Sequence record: NC_061447.1
Direction: 5' to 3' (one strand)
DNA length: 64,000 bases
In this document: piece after piece, positions 41,376 through 62,353 of the stretch
How positions within the stretch are numbered: the stretch's first letter is position 1
Layout of the letters: every line of letters starts with the position of its first letter
Position numbers and translations under genes: made by a program
Notes under the pieces: generated by a model
Told to the model about the DNA's origin: nothing
Databases searched by the model: none
Seen by the model: only the letters and a program-made list of their open reading frames with translations

Positions 41376-41428
41376 GCATAAATCTGGACAAAATGAGGAT
41401 TGTCTCAAAACAGCGTCCGTGATACAAT
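41376..41428 (+). promoter_or_regulatory. Class A promoter
   Basis: GCATAAATCTGGACAAAAT ... TGA-TACAAT at 41423, spacer 32. Confidence 0.85.
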
Positions 41429-41430
41429 AT

Positions 41431-41620
41431 AGAGACAGCGAGACATGTTCTCTCTGTGATGTGCCTATAACGTCTTGACCGTGTGTTTATTTTTTCCCGG
41501 GCACACGGTCCTTTTTAAAGCTGCTTCCTGTGAGGCTGTTTTAAAAAGGGTTCGATACCCTTTGAGCGCGTCGGGCTTTACGCGGTTTCCGCCTGCCGTG
41601 CTCTCATGCTAAACCGCAAA
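41431..41620 (+). ncRNA. Structured RNA or 5' leader with a T-arm mimic and an H-type pseudoknot
   Basis: 9-bp stem 41477-85/41502-10; 10-bp stem 41510-19/41540-49; AAAGGG-TTCGATA-CCCTTT; stem 41564-76/41591-603 whose loop GCGGTTT pairs with AAACCGC at 41611-17. Confidence 0.55.
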
Positions 41621-41630
41621 GGAAATAGAT

Positions 41631-55388: not shown

Positions 55389-57419
55389 ATGGCCAAAGCG
55401 CCTAAAGCTGCCAAAGTTAAAAAGAAAACGGGAGATGGGTCCGAACAAGAAGGATTCATGATTGCCGAAGGCCTTGATGGTATTCGTCTAAATCCCGGGA
55501 TGTACATGGGGGAACGCGGTGCCGATATGGCTTACCGTGCGGTTAAAGAGCCAGTCGATAACGATTACGATGAATACATCGCAGGTCGAAACAAACTTAT
55601 CGAAGTGGTCATCGACTACGATAACGACCTGAACGTTGTTGCCGATATGGCGAAAGGTATTCCGACTGACTTCAAGAAACTGAAAGACGGTTCGAAAGAA
55701 ACGATCATGACCGCAGCATTTAGCCGAGCACACGCTGGTGGTAAGTTCGATGATAAAGCATATAAGACCTCTGCTGGTACTCACGGCGTAGGCGTTGCAG
55801 CACTGAACGCAATCTCAAGTCGCCTGCGCGTATGGTCAATGTACAAAGGCGGTTGTGCGTATCAGATGTGGGAGTGCGGTGTCGCCAAGTCTGGCAAAGA
55901 CCCGAAACAGGTTAAAGCAGTAGACAAAGATGTTATGAGTCTGCTGCGTGAAAAGAAACACAGCAAGTACGGTACGATTGTCGCATGGACCCTCGACCAG
56001 ACTGTTGTGTCTGCTGACGTACAGCGTGGTAAAAAGCTGCCGAAGAACTATCGTCACGCTGCCCCAGACCCAGCACAGCTTGGCTCATGGCTGCGTAACA
56101 TGTCTATGCTCAACCCGGGCCTTGAAGTGCGCCTGACGTTGATCAAGAAAGGCAAGCGCAAAGAGTTCACCTTCCTCAACAAGAAAGACTTGGTGCACGT
56201 TGTCAAGACGATGGTTGAAGAACGCGAGCTTGGCTCAGTTGGTAAGCCGTTCATCTTCAAGAACGACAACATCACCGCTGCGCTGACGTGGACCGACCAT
56301 GCAGACACAGACAACTTCTTGTCCTTCGTTAACACCAGCCCGACAATTGACGGCGGCTGGCACGTTGTTGGTTTCCGTGACGCGCTGTTCGAAGCGATCA
56401 AACCTTTCATGAAAGAGCAGAAAGGTAAGAGCAAGAAGAAGCAGGGCTTCAAACAAGAAGACTTGCTTATTGGTCTGACTGGTATGTTCGACTGGCGTAT
56501 GCACGGTGCTCAGTACACCTCGCAGGTTAAAGACAAGCTGGCGAGCCGTGTCGAAAAAGAAGTGTACGAAATGCTGAAAGATGCTTTCGTGAAATACTTC
56601 AAAGAGAATAAGAAGGTCGCAACGACGATCATCAAACGCGCCGAAGCGATGAACAAGGGACGTGAAGAACTCAGCGCCGTCGTGAAGTCTATGGCTGACA
56701 CGAAGAAGAAGCTGAAAGGTAACTCACTACCCGCTGACCTGATCTCTGCGCTCAAGTGTAAGCCGCATGAGCGTGAGCTTATCGTTGTAGAAGGTGACTC
56801 TGCTGGTGGTACTGCGAAACACGCACGTAACCCTGACTATCAGGAAGTTATGCTTGCTGGTGGTAAGCCGCTCAACGGTCTGAAAGCCTCACTGGCTGAC
56901 GTGCTCAAGCACAAAGAAGTGCAGGGCATGTTAGTGTCTGTCGGTGCTGACCTGAAATCGTTAGACCCGAAAGCAGAAGCGCCGAAGTTAAGCACGAAGA
57001 ATCTGCGTGTCGGCAACCTGCTGTTCCTGATGGATGCTGACCCAGACGGCTTCCACATCGCAACGTTGTTCCTCGGCGTTATCTATCGTCTGCTGCCTGA
57101 CCTGATGAAAGAGGGCCGCGTGTGGATCGTAGATGCTCCGCTGTATAACGTGATGCACAAAGGCATTCACTACGGCGGCATGACGTTTGAAGAATGCCGA
57201 GCGAAAGCACCGTCTGCTGTAAAAGATAAAGAAATCGTTCGTGCAAAAGGTTGGGGTGAAGTTGAACCTGACGTGCTCGAAGCGATCTCATTCAATCCGA
57301 AGACTCGTCGCTTGATTCGTGTGAACCCGTTCACTAGCGTTGAGCAAGAACGTTTCTTCCGTGGTGTGCTGGCAGAAGATGCTGTCCATCGTCGCCGTCT
57401 GTTGGGTCTGGAGGAATAG
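55389..57419 (+). CDS. gyrB: Type IIA DNA topoisomerase subunit B (GyrB/ParE-like)
   Basis: IRLNPGMYMG, E..DN, HAGGKF, GTHGVG, EGDSAGG, GKPLN, DADPDG.HI, KG.GE. Confidence 0.95.
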   Translation: MAKAPKAAKVKKKTGDGSEQEGFMIAEGLDGIRLNPGMYMGERGADMAYRAVKEPVDNDYDEYIAGRNKLIEVVIDYDNDLNVVADMAKGIPTDFKKLKDGSKETIMTAAFSRAHAGGKFDDKAYKTSAGTHGVGVAALNAISSRLRVWSMYKGGCAYQMWECGVAKSGKDPKQVKAVDKDVMSLLREKKHSKYGTIVAWTLDQTVVSADVQRGKKLPKNYRHAAPDPAQLGSWLRNMSMLNPGLEVRLTLIKKGKRKEFTFLNKKDLVHVVKTMVEERELGSVGKPFIFKNDNITAALTWTDHADTDNFLSFVNTSPTIDGGWHVVGFRDALFEAIKPFMKEQKGKSKKKQGFKQEDLLIGLTGMFDWRMHGAQYTSQVKDKLASRVEKEVYEMLKDAFVKYFKENKKVATTIIKRAEAMNKGREELSAVVKSMADTKKKLKGNSLPADLISALKCKPHERELIVVEGDSAGGTAKHARNPDYQEVMLAGGKPLNGLKASLADVLKHKEVQGMLVSVGADLKSLDPKAEAPKLSTKNLRVGNLLFLMDADPDGFHIATLFLGVIYRLLPDLMKEGRVWIVDAPLYNVMHKGIHYGGMTFEECRAKAPSAVKDKEIVRAKGWGEVEPDVLEAISFNPKTRRLIRVNPFTSVEQERFFRGVLAEDAVHRRRLLGLEE

Positions 57420-57420
57420 C

Positions 57421-57741
57421 ATGTTCACGAAAGAGAACTTGTCGAACGGCACCGAAGTTCGCTTCATCGATCTGGGCGCTATTGAGCCGCGATTCGAAAA
57501 CAGACTCAAGAATCTGCGTACCAGTTATGTGCCACCAGAGACCGTGTCCGTTAAAGATAAAGACGGCAACGAGTTGGATCCGGAACTTGTCGGCAAAGAG
57601 ATTTGCGCCAAGTACGGATGCACTGGTCATACGGTGTCTGCGCATCGTATTGTTGACGACAAGCCTGTTGAGCGTGTGCAACTGCATATACCTCAATCAA
57701 TGCTCAGTAAGATTAACGCGATTGCCAAAGGGGAACAGTAA
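57421..57741 (+). CDS. Small hypothetical protein between the topoisomerase subunits
   Basis: GGAGG RBS; TAATG-coupled to gyrA. Confidence 0.75.
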   Translation: MFTKENLSNGTEVRFIDLGAIEPRFENRLKNLRTSYVPPETVSVKDKDGNELDPELVGKEICAKYGCTGHTVSAHRIVDDKPVERVQLHIPQSMLSKINAIAKGEQ

Positions 57742-59390
57742 TGGCAGTTAAGCCAAAGAAAGTAAAAGTCGAAAAGAAATCGACTGCGGTAGCGAAGCCT
57801 GCAAAGGTCAAGTTGAAATCGAAAGCTGTTGCTGTCGATGACATGCCGAAAAAGAAAAAGAAGAAAGGCGAAGTAGCAACAACCAGCACAGGCGCTTCAT
57901 TGTACCCGATGCTGGGTCAAGATGAATCTCTCATTCGTGACGAGAACCTCGCTGACTACACACGACGCGCTCTCTTCCAGTACGGCTCTTACGTTGTTGA
58001 AGACCGTGCTATCGCTGACTATCGTGACGGTCTCAAGCCTGTGCACCGTGCGTTACTTTGGTCGTTGTGTGACTTGGGCTTACGTCCAGGCGGAGCATTC
58101 AAGAAGTCTGCGCGTACCGTTGGTGATGCGTTAGGTAAGTATCACCCGCACGGCGATGCAGCCTGTTACGGTGCAATGGTAACGATTGCAAACACAGTGC
58201 CTCCTGCTGTAGCTGGTCAAGGTAACTGGGGCGACCCTGTAGCACCTGCCGCTGCGATGCGTTATACCGAAGCGAAAATGAGTAAGTTCGCAGGTAGCTT
58301 CTTGCTTGACCCTGACTACCTCGAAGTAACGCCGATGGTAGACAACTTCTCGAACGATATGAAGATACCTTTGTATCTGCCAGCGCTGCTGCCGTACATG
58401 TTGTTCAACGGTAGTGTGCCTGCACCAGCATACGGCGTTAAGTGCGGTAACCCATCGTTCAGCTTTACGTCTGTTGCGAAAGTCGTGTGCGATATGCTCA
58501 ACGGCAAAGAGTACAGCGCGAAGAAACTGGCAGACACGCTCAAAGTTAACCACGAGTACGGTTGCTTGGACATAAGCTCAGACGAAGACTATCTGGCGCT
58601 CATGTCTACTGGGCGAGGTAAAGTCACATACGAACCGCAGATGAAGATCGACGAGAAGGCGAAGACGATCACGATTCAAACGTATGTGCCCGGCGGTATG
58701 TCAAACAACTCCACCATCACTAAGAAGCTGGAGAAGATTGCTGAATGGCCTGGTGTTGTATCTGCATCAAACGCCAGCTCGAAGAAGAACAAAGATGCAG
58801 GCCCGTGGGGCGCCGCGTTTGCGATCAAGTGTCGTGGTAGCGAAGACCAATTGTATGAACTCGCCACCAAGATTCAGCGTGAAGTAACGTCGGCCATCAA
58901 CTACTCGCTCGGTGTGACAGTTCGACGTGCTGATGCCTCAAACAAGTTCATGTATCTGTCTTATGTGAACTACTTCAAAGCATGGGTTGCGTATCGCGTT
59001 AAGCTGGAAACTGCGATGCTCAAAAACAAGCTGGCCAAAGCAGAACGGCAGTTGTATCTCAATGAGGTATATTTGTGGGCTGTGGATAACATGGACAAGT
59101 TGCTCAAAGCTCTGCCTAAAGTTCTTATGGCTAAAGACCCTGATGAAATGCTGGCGAAGATTTTCAAGATTAAACTTGAAAGCGCCAAGATCATACTCGA
59201 CCGTCAGGTTCGTAAGTTGGCAAGACTCGAACGTGCAGCATTAGCCCAAAAAGTTAAAGAGCTGAAGGCCGAGATTGCAGAGTACAAAGGCGGTCTGAAA
59301 GAACCAGGCAAATATGCCGCTGCTGGTACTGCTGCGAAAGTTAAGGCTTATCTCAAGTCTCCAGACGACAAGCTGCCTGTAAGTCTTTGA
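57741..59390 (+). CDS. gyrA: Type IIA DNA topoisomerase subunit A (GyrA/ParC-like, no C-terminal pinwheel)
   Basis: DGLKPVHR, KKSAR.VG...GKYHPHGD, AAMRYTE (catalytic Tyr); only 549 aa. Confidence 0.95.
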   Translation: MAVKPKKVKVEKKSTAVAKPAKVKLKSKAVAVDDMPKKKKKKGEVATTSTGASLYPMLGQDESLIRDENLADYTRRALFQYGSYVVEDRAIADYRDGLKPVHRALLWSLCDLGLRPGGAFKKSARTVGDALGKYHPHGDAACYGAMVTIANTVPPAVAGQGNWGDPVAPAAAMRYTEAKMSKFAGSFLLDPDYLEVTPMVDNFSNDMKIPLYLPALLPYMLFNGSVPAPAYGVKCGNPSFSFTSVAKVVCDMLNGKEYSAKKLADTLKVNHEYGCLDISSDEDYLALMSTGRGKVTYEPQMKIDEKAKTITIQTYVPGGMSNNSTITKKLEKIAEWPGVVSASNASSKKNKDAGPWGAAFAIKCRGSEDQLYELATKIQREVTSAINYSLGVTVRRADASNKFMYLSYVNYFKAWVAYRVKLETAMLKNKLAKAERQLYLNEVYLWAVDNMDKLLKALPKVLMAKDPDEMLAKIFKIKLESAKIILDRQVRKLARLERAALAQKVKELKAEIAEYKGGLKEPGKYAAAGTAAKVKAYLKSPDDKLPVSL

Positions 59391-59411
59391 GAAATCTGTA
59401 AATACAACTAA

Positions 59412-59464
59412 GCATATTCCTGGACGAAATGCGGTTGTATCAGAATAGTCTTATATGATATAAT
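59412..59464 (+). promoter_or_regulatory. Class A promoter, preceded by a class B motif at 59391-59404
   Basis: GCATATTCCTGGACGAAAT ... TGA-TATAAT at 59459, spacer 32. Confidence 0.85.
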
Positions 59465-59470
59465 GGTACT

Positions 59471-59725
59471 GTTGAGTAGTGCTGTCTATGGGGAAGTAGG
59501 CAGCCTGCTCCTAACTTAAACTGGAGGAAAGTAGCGTCACAGCAAAATCACAACTCAGGCATTAAAAATAAACCGAGCTTAAAAAGCCGAACCGCCTGAC
59601 CTCGGACATATAAACTGAGGCAGAGCAATACTATAATCGACCCAAGTAATGCTAATATGATATCGTATCGGCATTCGAAGTGTCGCTAGGACTGGCAACA
59701 ATGGTCCTCAACTCTTAATGAAGTT
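59471..59725 (+). ncRNA. Candidate structured non-coding RNA or long leader (about 250 nt)
   Basis: No plausible ORF; consecutive hairpins; 5' GTTGAG (59471) is complementary to CTCAAC (59707); TCAGGC/GCCTGA stem. Confidence 0.5.
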
Positions 59726-59738
59726 TGGAAATCCATAG

Positions 59739-61013
59739 ATGAAAAATCAGGTAAGCAACCTTAAAGCTGGTTTAGAGAAGGTTAATGGAACATTGGCCTC
59801 ACTCCGTTCAGGCACCAATTTGAAACGCCAGCACGTTGTTGATTCATTGGGTCAGCCGACCTCTGTATTGGCAGACCTGACCAAGGCATTAAAGAGTAAT
59901 ACTTATAAGTCGTACCCCGATGTACTGCAATTGCGTGATTCTGTACGCGCAACCTGCACCACCTGCCTAAGCCTGTCAGAACAAGTGGCCGCTAAACGCA
60001 TTAAGCCACGCGAACTGATGGAAAAGCTCGGTGAGATTGTGAAGTCGTTTGAAGCCGACGTGTCGTTGGCGAAGTCTTGTCTAGGTTATCTGCCTGAGTC
60101 TCGCAAAGTCGTAACGCTCGACGATGTGAAGATGAACGCAGACGGTAGCACCGATCTGGATTCATTCCAGAAAGTTGCGGAAGAGATCTACGAACAGGAA
60201 TCGAATGACAAAGCTGTACGCCGTGAGCAACGCGAAGATGCTGCGACTGCTAAAACAAGTCGTGTGCTCAAGCGCCTCAAGGACACGTACGGACACAAAG
60301 TCCCGAGAACGTTCAAGAACGCTATTCAGATAGTCCAACTTCCTGTGATGGCTCGATTCGGTACACTCGCCATGAGTCCTGAGTCGTTATCGCGTATGGG
60401 TTTCAAAATCGAAACTGCTGGTCTGCACTCAACCCCAAGTTCAGACTTAGGTATCATCTTTGAAAACCAGCTCCTGCTTTTCTTCCGCATGTCTGACGCG
60501 AAAGGTATGGCAGAAGAAGCCGCGAAGGATCACAAGATGCTCGATGGTACCCTCGTAGAACGCAAACGTCTCCAGAAAGAACGCAACGCAGAACGCCGTG
60601 ATCTCAAGAAGCTCAATCAGCTTTTGGAGCAGGCGAAGTCGCTGAAAGCTCGTCGTGCTCTCCGTGAACAAATCACAGAGACACAAGAGAACATCGACGA
60701 TATTACTGCGAAGCTGGACTCTATGGAAACGAAAGTCCGTGCGAGTAACTCCAAAGAGCGCGTGTATCGCCAGATGAAGACCTCAAACGATCACGCGATG
60801 TTAGACTACCTTAACCCTATTGTCGATATGCTCAATGAAAAAAGCAGTTCCACGCTCGGTCTGTTCACCACCATGCCGTTACGCGGCGTGATGAAAGACA
60901 GCGATGTGCATTGTGCTTGGCTTATGGAGAAATCAGCTATCAACTTGTTGCTGCGCCACACTGGCGGCGACGTGAAGTTGCAGAACTGGTTCCTGCCGTG
61001 GACAAATGGCTAA
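59739..61013 (+). CDS. Hypothetical coiled-coil protein
   Basis: 424 aa; long charged heptad region in the C-terminal half. Confidence 0.8.
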   Translation: MKNQVSNLKAGLEKVNGTLASLRSGTNLKRQHVVDSLGQPTSVLADLTKALKSNTYKSYPDVLQLRDSVRATCTTCLSLSEQVAAKRIKPRELMEKLGEIVKSFEADVSLAKSCLGYLPESRKVVTLDDVKMNADGSTDLDSFQKVAEEIYEQESNDKAVRREQREDAATAKTSRVLKRLKDTYGHKVPRTFKNAIQIVQLPVMARFGTLAMSPESLSRMGFKIETAGLHSTPSSDLGIIFENQLLLFFRMSDAKGMAEEAAKDHKMLDGTLVERKRLQKERNAERRDLKKLNQLLEQAKSLKARRALREQITETQENIDDITAKLDSMETKVRASNSKERVYRQMKTSNDHAMLDYLNPIVDMLNEKSSSTLGLFTTMPLRGVMKDSDVHCAWLMEKSAINLLLRHTGGDVKLQNWFLPWTNG

Positions 61014-61548
61014 CAACGATAACCGACTACCAGCGGTAACGAAAGGTGATTTATCGCAGTGTATCATCTGCATGAAGTTCAGTAGATCGATTCACTATCA
61101 CCATACCGTTCCCCGCTCACTGGGAGGCGAGCTTTCGCTACAAATCCCAATAGACGGTGACTGCCACACAACGCTTCACGCAAAAGCAGAAGCTGTGGTA
61201 GCGAAGTTAGCAGGTAACCGTAAGCAACCTATCGGTACGTTCTGGGATGACCCAGACGCCGAACGTAGAGCACAAACGTGGCTAGACATTCTGGTAGATG
61301 CTATGCTCAACCCACCGGTACAGCCTGGACAGAAAGAAGTCCTGCTGCCGATGATTAAGGTCGACATGGAAACCAGACATGCGCTAGAACTTCTAAAGCG
61401 CGACACGCCTGGCATTACTAATATGAGCCAAGTGTTGCGGTACTGCATTGAGACAACATTGAAATCAAAGGGGTTAAAAAATGGCGAATCCAAAAGTACG
61501 CACTCTGGACATCAAGGCACTCGTAAAAAGCGAACTCACTTGTGGTGA
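61006..61548 (+). CDS. HNH-like zinc-binding domain fused to an RHH-like domain
   Basis: CIIC...HYHHTVPRSLGG...IPIDGDCHTTLH; C-terminal MIKVD..TRHALELLK...TNMSQVLRYCIE. Confidence 0.6.
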   Translation: MANNDNRLPAVTKGDLSQCIICMKFSRSIHYHHTVPRSLGGELSLQIPIDGDCHTTLHAKAEAVVAKLAGNRKQPIGTFWDDPDAERRAQTWLDILVDAMLNPPVQPGQKEVLLPMIKVDMETRHALELLKRDTPGITNMSQVLRYCIETTLKSKGLKNGESKSTHSGHQGTRKKRTHLW

Positions 61549-62353
61549 CTGCCGCGGGCTGACTCGTGATGCCTTGTTACCGACTGCCGAAAAGCCGTGT
61601 GCTACACAAGGTCAGTTAGCAGATTCTAAGATCTGCAAACACTATCGCTCTGACAGCCAATCACTGACCGAGCTGATGACCGAGCACGGCGATACGCTGG
61701 TGGCTCTTTTCAACACGTTCCGTAAGATGTCGGACAAAGACCTGCGCGTTGTCGCTGGTATGCTGCTGTCTGAATCTAAAACTCGTCGTCATGGCGTGAA
61801 GATGGGACAAGCTGTATTTGTTCGTTATCGTGGTCGTGAGACACGCAACTACCTGAACAACTTCATGGCAGCGCGTGTGCTGGACGTTGACGATGATTCG
61901 ATTCGCCTTATTTCCGAGAAAGGTGATATCGTTCTGACTTACGCCAATAACGGCTTCAATGGTCCGTCCGTATATACGAAGAAGCAATTTGCTAAACTGC
62001 GCACAGAGATGATCAAAGCTGGTAAGCTGATCGACCCTGAGCAGGAGATCAAAACCGCTAAACGTAATCTTCCACAAGAAGACAACGTTAACTTCTCCGC
62101 ACCAAGTTCACTCGATGGCTTCGCTATTCCTCTTATGGAAGATGTGGCGAAAGGCCGTGGCGGTAAGCGTAAGGGTAAGAAGACTCAGACGCTGGTGGAC
62201 ATTGTGTCTATGATCGAGAACGGTCACGACATGGGTGCAGAGCAGGACGAGTCAGGTGTAATGACTCTTGGTGGCAACTCCTACAAGTCTAAAGAGAAGA
62301 AAAAGAAACTCCGTGTCGGTAAGAACGGTGTTGTCGAACTCGGCGACCTGTAA
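61481..62353 (+). CDS. Hypothetical protein with an N-terminal Cys cluster
   Basis: CGDC...PC...ICKHY; 290 aa. Confidence 0.8.
   Translation: MANPKVRTLDIKALVKSELTCGDCRGLTRDALLPTAEKPCATQGQLADSKICKHYRSDSQSLTELMTEHGDTLVALFNTFRKMSDKDLRVVAGMLLSESKTRRHGVKMGQAVFVRYRGRETRNYLNNFMAARVLDVDDDSIRLISEKGDIVLTYANNGFNGPSVYTKKQFAKLRTEMIKAGKLIDPEQEIKTAKRNLPQEDNVNFSAPSSLDGFAIPLMEDVAKGRGGKRKGKKTQTLVDIVSMIENGHDMGAEQDESGVMTLGGNSYKSKEKKKKLRVGKNGVVELGDL

Follow-up and report, generated by a model that had tools for sequence, protein, structure and literature searches.

The translational operators that phages carry in 5' leaders include the pseudoknot of the T4 gene 32 leader and the operators of T4 gene 43 and regA, and the 5' UTR of Escherichia coli ompA provides the 5'-terminal stabilizer hairpin of a bacterial mRNA. 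To our knowledge, jumbo phages are poorly annotated and their post-transcriptional gene control is almost unstudied. The locus described here resembled the T4 operators in that a conserved RNA fold immediately precedes a ribosome-binding site in an operon for phage DNA metabolism, with a proposed cis effect on initiation. However, the T4 operators consist of one hairpin or pseudoknot, whereas this RNA was roughly 270 nt long with eight or more helices; there was no sequence similarity between them, and a repressor is known for the T4 systems alone, the leader role here being putative. As in ompA-type stabilizers, a stable hairpin (P1) began about 3 nt past the predicted 5' terminus and was constrained in its pairing alone, which is the signature of a 5' stabilizer, but P1 was one module of a much larger leader. 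The multiple helices, invariant junctions and position next to the ribosome-binding site were reminiscent of riboswitches and other complex-folded leaders in Rfam; unlike Rfam riboswitches, this RNA matched no model, had no clear expression platform and did not retain an intact core across genera. It shared with GOLLD, ROOL and HEARO a phage-borne location, a length of more than 200 nt and helices supported by covariation, but it was much smaller, tied to one start codon, confined to one jumbo-phage clade and without a match in Rfam.

The window (i.e., the whole 64,000-nt stretch of DNA that was analysed) matched, letter for letter, the final 64 kb of the 263-kb genome of Erwinia jumbo phage pEa_SNUABM_33 (genus Alexandravirus); window positions equal record positions minus 199237. 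Every annotated gene of the window was carried by the plus strand. The original prediction placed the element in the largest ORF-free gap, and the 348 nt at 59391-59738 did exceed all other intergenic gaps between annotated genes in the window, the runner-up being 255 nt. The gap was flanked by two genes:

57741-59390, plus strand: topoisomerase II A-subunit-like gene, the 5' neighbour (Pfam DNA_topoisoIV, E = 4e-58)
59739-61013, plus strand: 424-aa gene, the 3' neighbour (RefSeq gp336; PHROG 34809, unknown function)

The leader preceded the 424-aa gene in every genus examined. Pfam and PHROGs were uninformative on the function of the 424-aa protein, and its AlphaFold model (pLDDT 77.5; helical with a small sheet) returned no significant fold match. 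Neither Pfam nor PHROGs lent any support to the label 'sigma-like' that had been given to the last gene of the operon. Across 55389-62353, the topoisomerase genes were split into pieces, beginning with a GyrB-like gene (676 aa), a 106-aa ORF, a GyrA-like gene (549 aa) and the leader, and continuing with the 424-aa gene, a weak HNH-like 180-aa ORF that overlapped the genes on both sides, and a 290-aa gene assigned to the PHROG 'DNA topoisomerase'; this order was kept in six genera.

Two promoter-like motifs preceded the RNA:

59394-59404, plus strand: phage-specific promoter-like motif ATCTGTAAATA ('class B' of the original prediction), recognized by enrichment and conservation
59435-59464, plus strand: sigma-70-type promoter with -35-like TTGTAT (59435-40), 18-nt spacer and extended -10 TGATATAAT (59456-64)

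The form CTGTAAATA, at 59396-59404, sat sixty bases upstream of the extended -10. It had six copies in the window, all on the plus strand, where 0.45 were expected, and in each of the six genera, even the most distant, it immediately followed the stop codon of the topoisomerase gene. The pattern TGNTAYAAT had ten sites in the window, again all on the plus strand and mostly in intergenic gaps (3.05 expected). The TGATATAAT element at 59456-59464 lay 7 nt before 59471, as stated for the 'class A' -10, and the class B motif did precede it; transcription was predicted to start near G59471. The two stacked promoters were therefore borne out as motifs, being enriched, co-oriented and conserved at this locus in relatives; the -10 and a CGGTTG block were kept in Alexandravirus, Y3, Yoloswag, SNUABM_5 and fHe-Yen9-02. 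The early and late expression of the original prediction stays putative, suggested by these two conserved promoter-like motifs. A strict promoter scan made no call for the TGATATAAT site because its -35 matches at only three of six positions. With respect to a T4-type late promoter, CTGTAAATA was enriched, conserved and similar to the T4 late TATAAATA box, and searches of Pfam and PHROGs gave no gp55-like factor. Between the two motifs, the sequence at 59405-59455 (GCATATTC..GGACGAAA.GCGGTTG) had an identity of 0.84-0.86, above that of the 5' domain of the RNA; a regulator may bind there, or the stretch may belong to the structure of a longer transcript.

The gap holds a genuine, evolutionarily conserved structured RNA on the plus strand. 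The plus strand of 59471-59725 folded at -71.8 kcal/mol (z = -2.9 against shuffles), while the minus strand folded no better than shuffles (z = -0.16); the other Alexandravirus leaders and that of Y3 produced plus-strand z-scores from -2.9 to -4.1 in all cases tested. The homologous gap was present in 46 phage records at 67-100% identity, and the comparison set comprised 19 distinct sequences (17 phage records and two IMG/VR metagenomic contigs); covariation counts used 19-25 homologous sequences. Mean pairwise column identity was 0.38-0.58 in the 5' half, against about 0.8 in flanking coding sequence, and 0.72-0.87 in the 3' half, about the same as coding sequence. RNAalifold failed across the variable 5' half when applied to plain MAFFT alignments; these are not structure-aware, and the homologs were therefore realigned using covariance models, seeded with the three near-identical closest sequences and a hand-derived structure. 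The resulting pair counts were:

5' domain (59468-59631): 92.9% of cells with standard pairs (shuffles 71.6%); 28 of 32 pairs changed on both sides; 113 cells changed on both sides (shuffles 31.6); 0/500 shuffles reaching the observed value; pairing 28-47% with the 3' partner slid
3' domain (59621-59741): 97.0% of cells with standard pairs; both-side changes in 9 of 22 pairs (32 cells); 0/500 shuffles reaching the observed value; pairing 25-45% with the 3' partner slid
3' domain with other genera: 95.9% of cells with standard pairs; both-side changes in 12 of 22 pairs (53 cells); 0/500 shuffles reaching the observed value; slid pairing 28-49%

As the counts derive from structure-fitted alignments, pairing is inflated somewhat, and the shuffle and slid controls offset this in part. 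The signal was considered real because the effect was large, the helix sequences had turned over completely, and the same hairpins appeared when each homolog was folded alone. The covariation for which the original prediction had asked was present, the helices being kept through compensatory changes at levels above both controls. Furthermore, about 49 G-U or U-G cells (in the 3' domain, other genera included) would be A-C mismatches on the minus strand, and the frequency of such pairs fixes the RNA to the plus strand.

The 5' domain evolved fast and only its helices were kept. Its elements were as follows:

59474-59510, plus strand: P1, a 14-bp 5'-terminal hairpin (59474-79 and 59481-88 with 59497-59510; U59480 bulged; loop 59489-96)
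59523-59527, plus strand: GGAGG, invariant and single-stranded (GAGG invariant in 19 sequences)
59555-59599, plus strand: P2, enclosing P3 (59555-60 with 59594-99)
59562-59572, plus strand: conserved A-rich stretch inside P2
59574-89, plus strand: P3 (59574-75 and 59577-80 with 59584-89)
59600-59620, plus strand: P4, hairpin CCUCGG/CUGAGG

P1 started 3 nt past the predicted transcription start and had both-side changes in 13 of 14 pairs, with 96.8% of cells paired; a hairpin of 13-17 bp appeared in its place in every homolog folded alone, and the loop was a GGGA (GNRA-type) tetraloop in most relatives. All six pairs of P4 changed on both sides (95% of cells paired), and every Alexandravirus, and Y3 too, had a hairpin at this place, though of unrelated sequence. 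P3 changed on both sides in four of six pairs, with 90% of cells paired. Both-side changes affected five of the six P2 pairs, but P2 was 83% paired with many gaps, and so is not the same in all subclades. The GGAG of the invariant GGAGG was found also in Y3, Yoloswag and SNUABM_5, and no start codon stood at Shine-Dalgarno distance from 59523-27; RNAalifold paired GGAGG with CUC-U at 59712-15, a predicted pairing in which both sides were invariant.

The 3' domain was organized around a compact core adjoining the start codon:

59630-59685, plus strand: 3' core, comprising conserved ACUAUAAU followed by Pa, P5a and P5b
59638-41 with 59682-85, plus strand: Pa, CGAC/GUCG, enclosing P5a and P5b
59648-53 with 59670-75, plus strand: P5a, AAUGCU/GGCAUU
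59655-59 with 59664-68, plus strand: P5b, AUAUG/CGUAU
59674-80, plus strand: UUCGAAG
59688-59708, plus strand: P6, hairpin AGGACUG/UGGUCCU (59688-94 with 59702-08), after a CU linker
59709-59741, plus strand: conserved CAACU after P6, then the start region to AUG (59739-41)
59710-13 with 59722-25, plus strand: proposed P7, AACU/AGUU, nearly invariant within the genus
59726-28 (UGG) to 59733-35 (CCA), plus strand: predicted mini-hairpin, also invariant within the genus, enclosing a weak Shine-Dalgarno GGA

Pa was 100% paired, and those of its pairs that varied changed on both sides across genera. P5 had both-side changes in 8 of 11 pairs; for example, G59651/C59672 switched jointly to A/U. In P6, 97% of cells were paired, many through G-U and U-G variants, and A-U to G-C changes affected both sides across genera; by eye, the equivalent helix was AGGGCC/GGCUCU in Yoloswag, AGGGC/GCCCU in fHe-Yen9-02 and AGAGUC/GGCUCU in JA11. 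A small hairpin occupied the stretch corresponding to 59709-59741 in all six genera, and the conserved domain continued unbroken to the ribosome-binding site and ATG. The GG of the Shine-Dalgarno GGA was predicted to be paired in most homologs, and predicted occlusion of the ribosome-binding site was moderate (mean unpaired 0.40-0.61). A 6-codon mini-ORF (ATG...TAG, 59718-59738) stopped exactly at the main ATG in pEa_SNUABM_33; it was out of frame in the SNUABM_3 and SNUABM_13 groups and is therefore probably not a conserved upstream ORF.

The UUCGAAG at 59674-80 varied only in ways that fit a tRNA T-loop (UUCAAAG in SNUABM_35, UUCGACG in SNUABM_13), and GNRA-type loops were seen on P1 and on some copies of P3 and P5; judged by their sequences, these T-loop-like and GNRA-type elements hint at tertiary contacts. 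Although UUCGAAG resembles a T-loop, the surrounding hairpin, CGGCATT/AGTGTCG, was unsupported.

That hairpin was one of nine helices in the original prediction, four of which were upheld by covariation: GCTGTCTA/TAGGCAGC, which forms the upper part of P1, GCTT/AAGC (P3), CCTCGG/CTGAGG (P4) and AGGAC/GTCCT (P6). TCAGGC/GCCTGA (P2) was weakly supported, being 83% paired and gap-rich. Four others failed. AGCAATACT/AGTAATGCT was 53% paired, no better than the slid controls, and CTCC/GGAG was 70% paired. CGGCATT/AGTGTCG was 84% paired almost without both-side changes, cannot form in the SNUABM_13 group, and clashes with the covarying AAUGCU/GGCAUU. The helix proposed to close the domain, GTTGAG/CTCAAC, had both-side changes in none of its six pairs, five of which departed only through unpaired cells, and shuffles did equally well; the GAG of its 5' arm belongs to P1. 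The 3' core backed by covariation consists instead of CGAC/GUCG, AAUGCU/GGCAUU and AGGACUG/UGGUCCU.

Outside Alexandravirus, orthologs of the 424-aa gene were identified in the following phages:

Erwinia phage Y3 (Sasquatchvirus): 70.5% identity
Yoloswag (Yoloswagvirus): 52.0% identity
pEa_SNUABM_5 (Rivsvirus): 51.8% identity
Yersinia phage fHe-Yen9-02 (genus not assigned): 51.7% identity
Dickeya phages JA11 and JA29 (Salmondvirus): 42-43% identity

All of these had a common gene order, in which a topoisomerase II-A gene was followed by a gap of 149-345 nt, the 424-aa ortholog, an HNH-like gene and a 290-aa 'DNA topoisomerase'. A covariance model rebuilt from the first matches (R3) located the 3' domain at the corresponding position in Y3 (E = 2e-26), Yoloswag (6e-15), SNUABM_5 (1e-4), fHe-Yen9-02 (1.5e-3) and the metagenomic relative L201. 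Between SNUABM_5 and L201, P5 differed at three compensated positions (CUGCGUA/UGCGUAG vs CUGCACA/UGUGCAG). R3 did not detect the Salmondvirus leader, in which the same layout was recognized by eye: a hairpin, UU, AGAGUC/GGCUCU, CACU, and a third hairpin (CUCG/CGAG) with a GAGG Shine-Dalgarno in its 3' arm. The first hairpin of this layout was GCAUACCA/UGGUAUGC in JA11, GCAUAUCA/UGAUAUGC in JA29 and GUGC-GAAA-GCAC in the relative L198. At the start of the Salmondvirus gap there was also a long inverted repeat, GGGAUCUGU...ACAGAUCCC, with U's after it (L178:745-845, which is JA11; L198:1030-1140) and CTGTAAATA motifs enclosed in it; its sequence suggests a terminator-like hairpin that contains promoters.

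In five further genera the 3' core therefore reappeared, with different sequence, just before the ribosome-binding site of the 424-aa ortholog, and the cross-genus comparison identifies the P5-P6-P7 module, set against the ribosome-binding site of the 424-aa gene, as the constant feature. Junction nucleotides were invariant in Alexandravirus and Y3, partly kept in Yoloswag, SNUABM_5 and fHe-Yen9-02, and largely lost in Salmondvirus. Alexandravirus and Y3 have the large 5' domain in addition; as Salmondvirus lacks it, this domain may serve another role than the core. Each genome had a single copy of the leader. Viral and prokaryotic collections were searched with motif scans filtered by R3, and viral and metagenome contigs with protein-anchored searches. 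Outside the phage clade, IMG/VR, the JGI metagenomes and 185,579 prokaryote genomes gave no member; looser DNA patterns produced only chance matches in the viral and prokaryotic collections, none recognized by R3, and the protein-anchored searches yielded just two informative relatives, L198 and L201. The distribution of the RNA is limited to Alexandra-like jumbo phages and sister genera, with Erwinia, Dickeya and Yersinia as hosts.

Searches for known RNA classes were negative. Using the gathering thresholds of Rfam 15 (4227 models), cmscan found no match in the whole window, and at E<=10 over 59300-59850 the only result was a 12-bit chance match outside the RNA; hence the Infernal/Rfam check that had been suggested showed no family matching this RNA, even permissively. 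ARAGORN identified no tRNA or tmRNA genes in the window, which together with the Rfam result agrees with the earlier view that tRNA, tmRNA and group I intron signatures were lacking. A group I intron was also rejected because both flanking genes were complete, the upstream topoisomerase gene having its own stop codon and a complete DNA_topoisoIV domain, and the downstream gene its own conserved ATG. No conserved small ORF existed in the gap among relatives; a 40-aa ORF on the minus strand (59579-59701) was discounted as a gene, owing to 1-nt indels and wholly replaced sequence among relatives. In the literature searched, neither this RNA nor a transcriptome of the phages was described; the structured RNA leader is absent both from Rfam and from that literature. 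Elsewhere in the window, the second-largest gap (41376-41630) contained an extended -10, TGATACAAT, at 41420-28, after which about 200 nt folded with z = -4.7 (0/200 shuffles as good); a T-arm-like GGGUUCGAUACCC was present at about 41551-63, where ARAGORN found no tRNA. This gap may contain a second structured leader or ncRNA.

The original prediction had offered two alternatives, a novel ncRNA or a long regulatory leader. A structured RNA is upheld in either case, and the leader is favoured over a free-standing ncRNA since there is no terminator, the 3' domain runs unbroken into the ribosome-binding site, and the same hairpin pair occurs upstream of the orthologs. The RNA lay between promoter and start codon, on the sense strand and free of terminators, with the same downstream gene in six genera. 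On this comparative footing, the stretch is probably the cis-acting 5' untranslated leader of an mRNA that spans the 424-aa gene and the next four genes, and the most likely role suggested by its position is control of the translation or mRNA stability of the gene just downstream. Transcription would start at about 59471 from the host-type extended -10 promoter, with a second putative start about 65 nt further upstream, from the phage-type CTGTAAATA promoter. P1 would shield the early transcript from decay at its 5' end, while the P5-P6-P7 module, beside the ribosome-binding site, would set the frequency of ribosome initiation on the 424-aa gene, most likely as the operator for a protein partner. 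The conserved P5-P6-P7 nucleotides, next to a weak and partly paired Shine-Dalgarno, would suit a protein operator; a ligand-sensing or ribosome-docking role appears less likely.

Among the alternatives, a stable trans-acting RNA, released by cleavage from the 5' part of the operon transcript or produced through inefficient termination, and for instance binding a host or phage protein, is unlikely. Its large size, many helices, GNRA-type loops and many invariant unpaired nucleotides make it more elaborate than most operators, and the A-rich single-stranded stretch at 59562-72 could be read in the same way; but there was neither a terminator between promoter and ATG, where a terminator scan found none, nor a conserved 3'-end signal, and the conserved module always abutted the ribosome-binding site of the same gene. 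Public RNA runs were sparse, with a single low-depth contig of 242 nt (59456-59697) in run X14 and scattered coverage in other runs. That only this contig covers the region, with nothing on either side, would suit a discrete RNA; yet its 5' boundary falls within the promoter, before the predicted start, and its 3' boundary within the loop of P6, so that this low-depth contig outlines no RNA species. A further, quite unlikely proposal sees a new class of complex-folded regulatory RNA, either a riboswitch or a module that docks proteins or ribosomes and has tertiary contacts of GNRA and T-loop type; it would time or dose the topoisomerase-linked operon, and its 5' domain would be an accessory scaffold docking onto the P5-P6 core.

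A riboswitch proper, in which the 3' domain would bind a small molecule or ion and alter access to the ribosome-binding site, is more doubtful still. Its location in a 5' leader beside the ribosome-binding site, the invariant junction nucleotides ACUAUAAUCGACC, CUAAUAUG and UUCGAAGUGUCGCUAGG around covarying helices, and the predicted partial pairing of the Shine-Dalgarno all fit such a role. Against these stand the failure of any Rfam riboswitch model to score, even at E=10, the lack of a known metabolic role for the downstream 424-aa gene, and the Salmondvirus leader, which is without most of the invariant junction nucleotides and in which P5 is a 4-bp GNRA hairpin; moreover, with no terminator and no covarying alternative helix, there was no recognizable expression platform. 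Finally, a DNA-level element (replication origin, packaging site or protein-binding array) whose inverted repeats mimic RNA hairpins is highly improbable, for although this is the largest non-coding gap, AT-rich, set among DNA topoisomerase genes and containing -10-like words, its helices tolerate G-U and not A-C, as is specific to plus-strand RNA, their sequences turn over completely with pairing kept, unlike sequence-specific DNA sites, and no direct-repeat array was seen.

The leader is thus a well-supported, uncatalogued RNA with enough natural variation to define its helices and a fixed place in a conserved topoisomerase cluster, and it is a candidate for a new Rfam family. Together, the TGNTAYAAT and CTGTAAATA site sets would provide a first promoter map of this arm of the phage. 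Should the leader bind a ligand or protein, this would be a pointer to the function of the 424-aa gene; and the leader offers a tractable handle on regulation in phages that are used against fire blight and soft rot.
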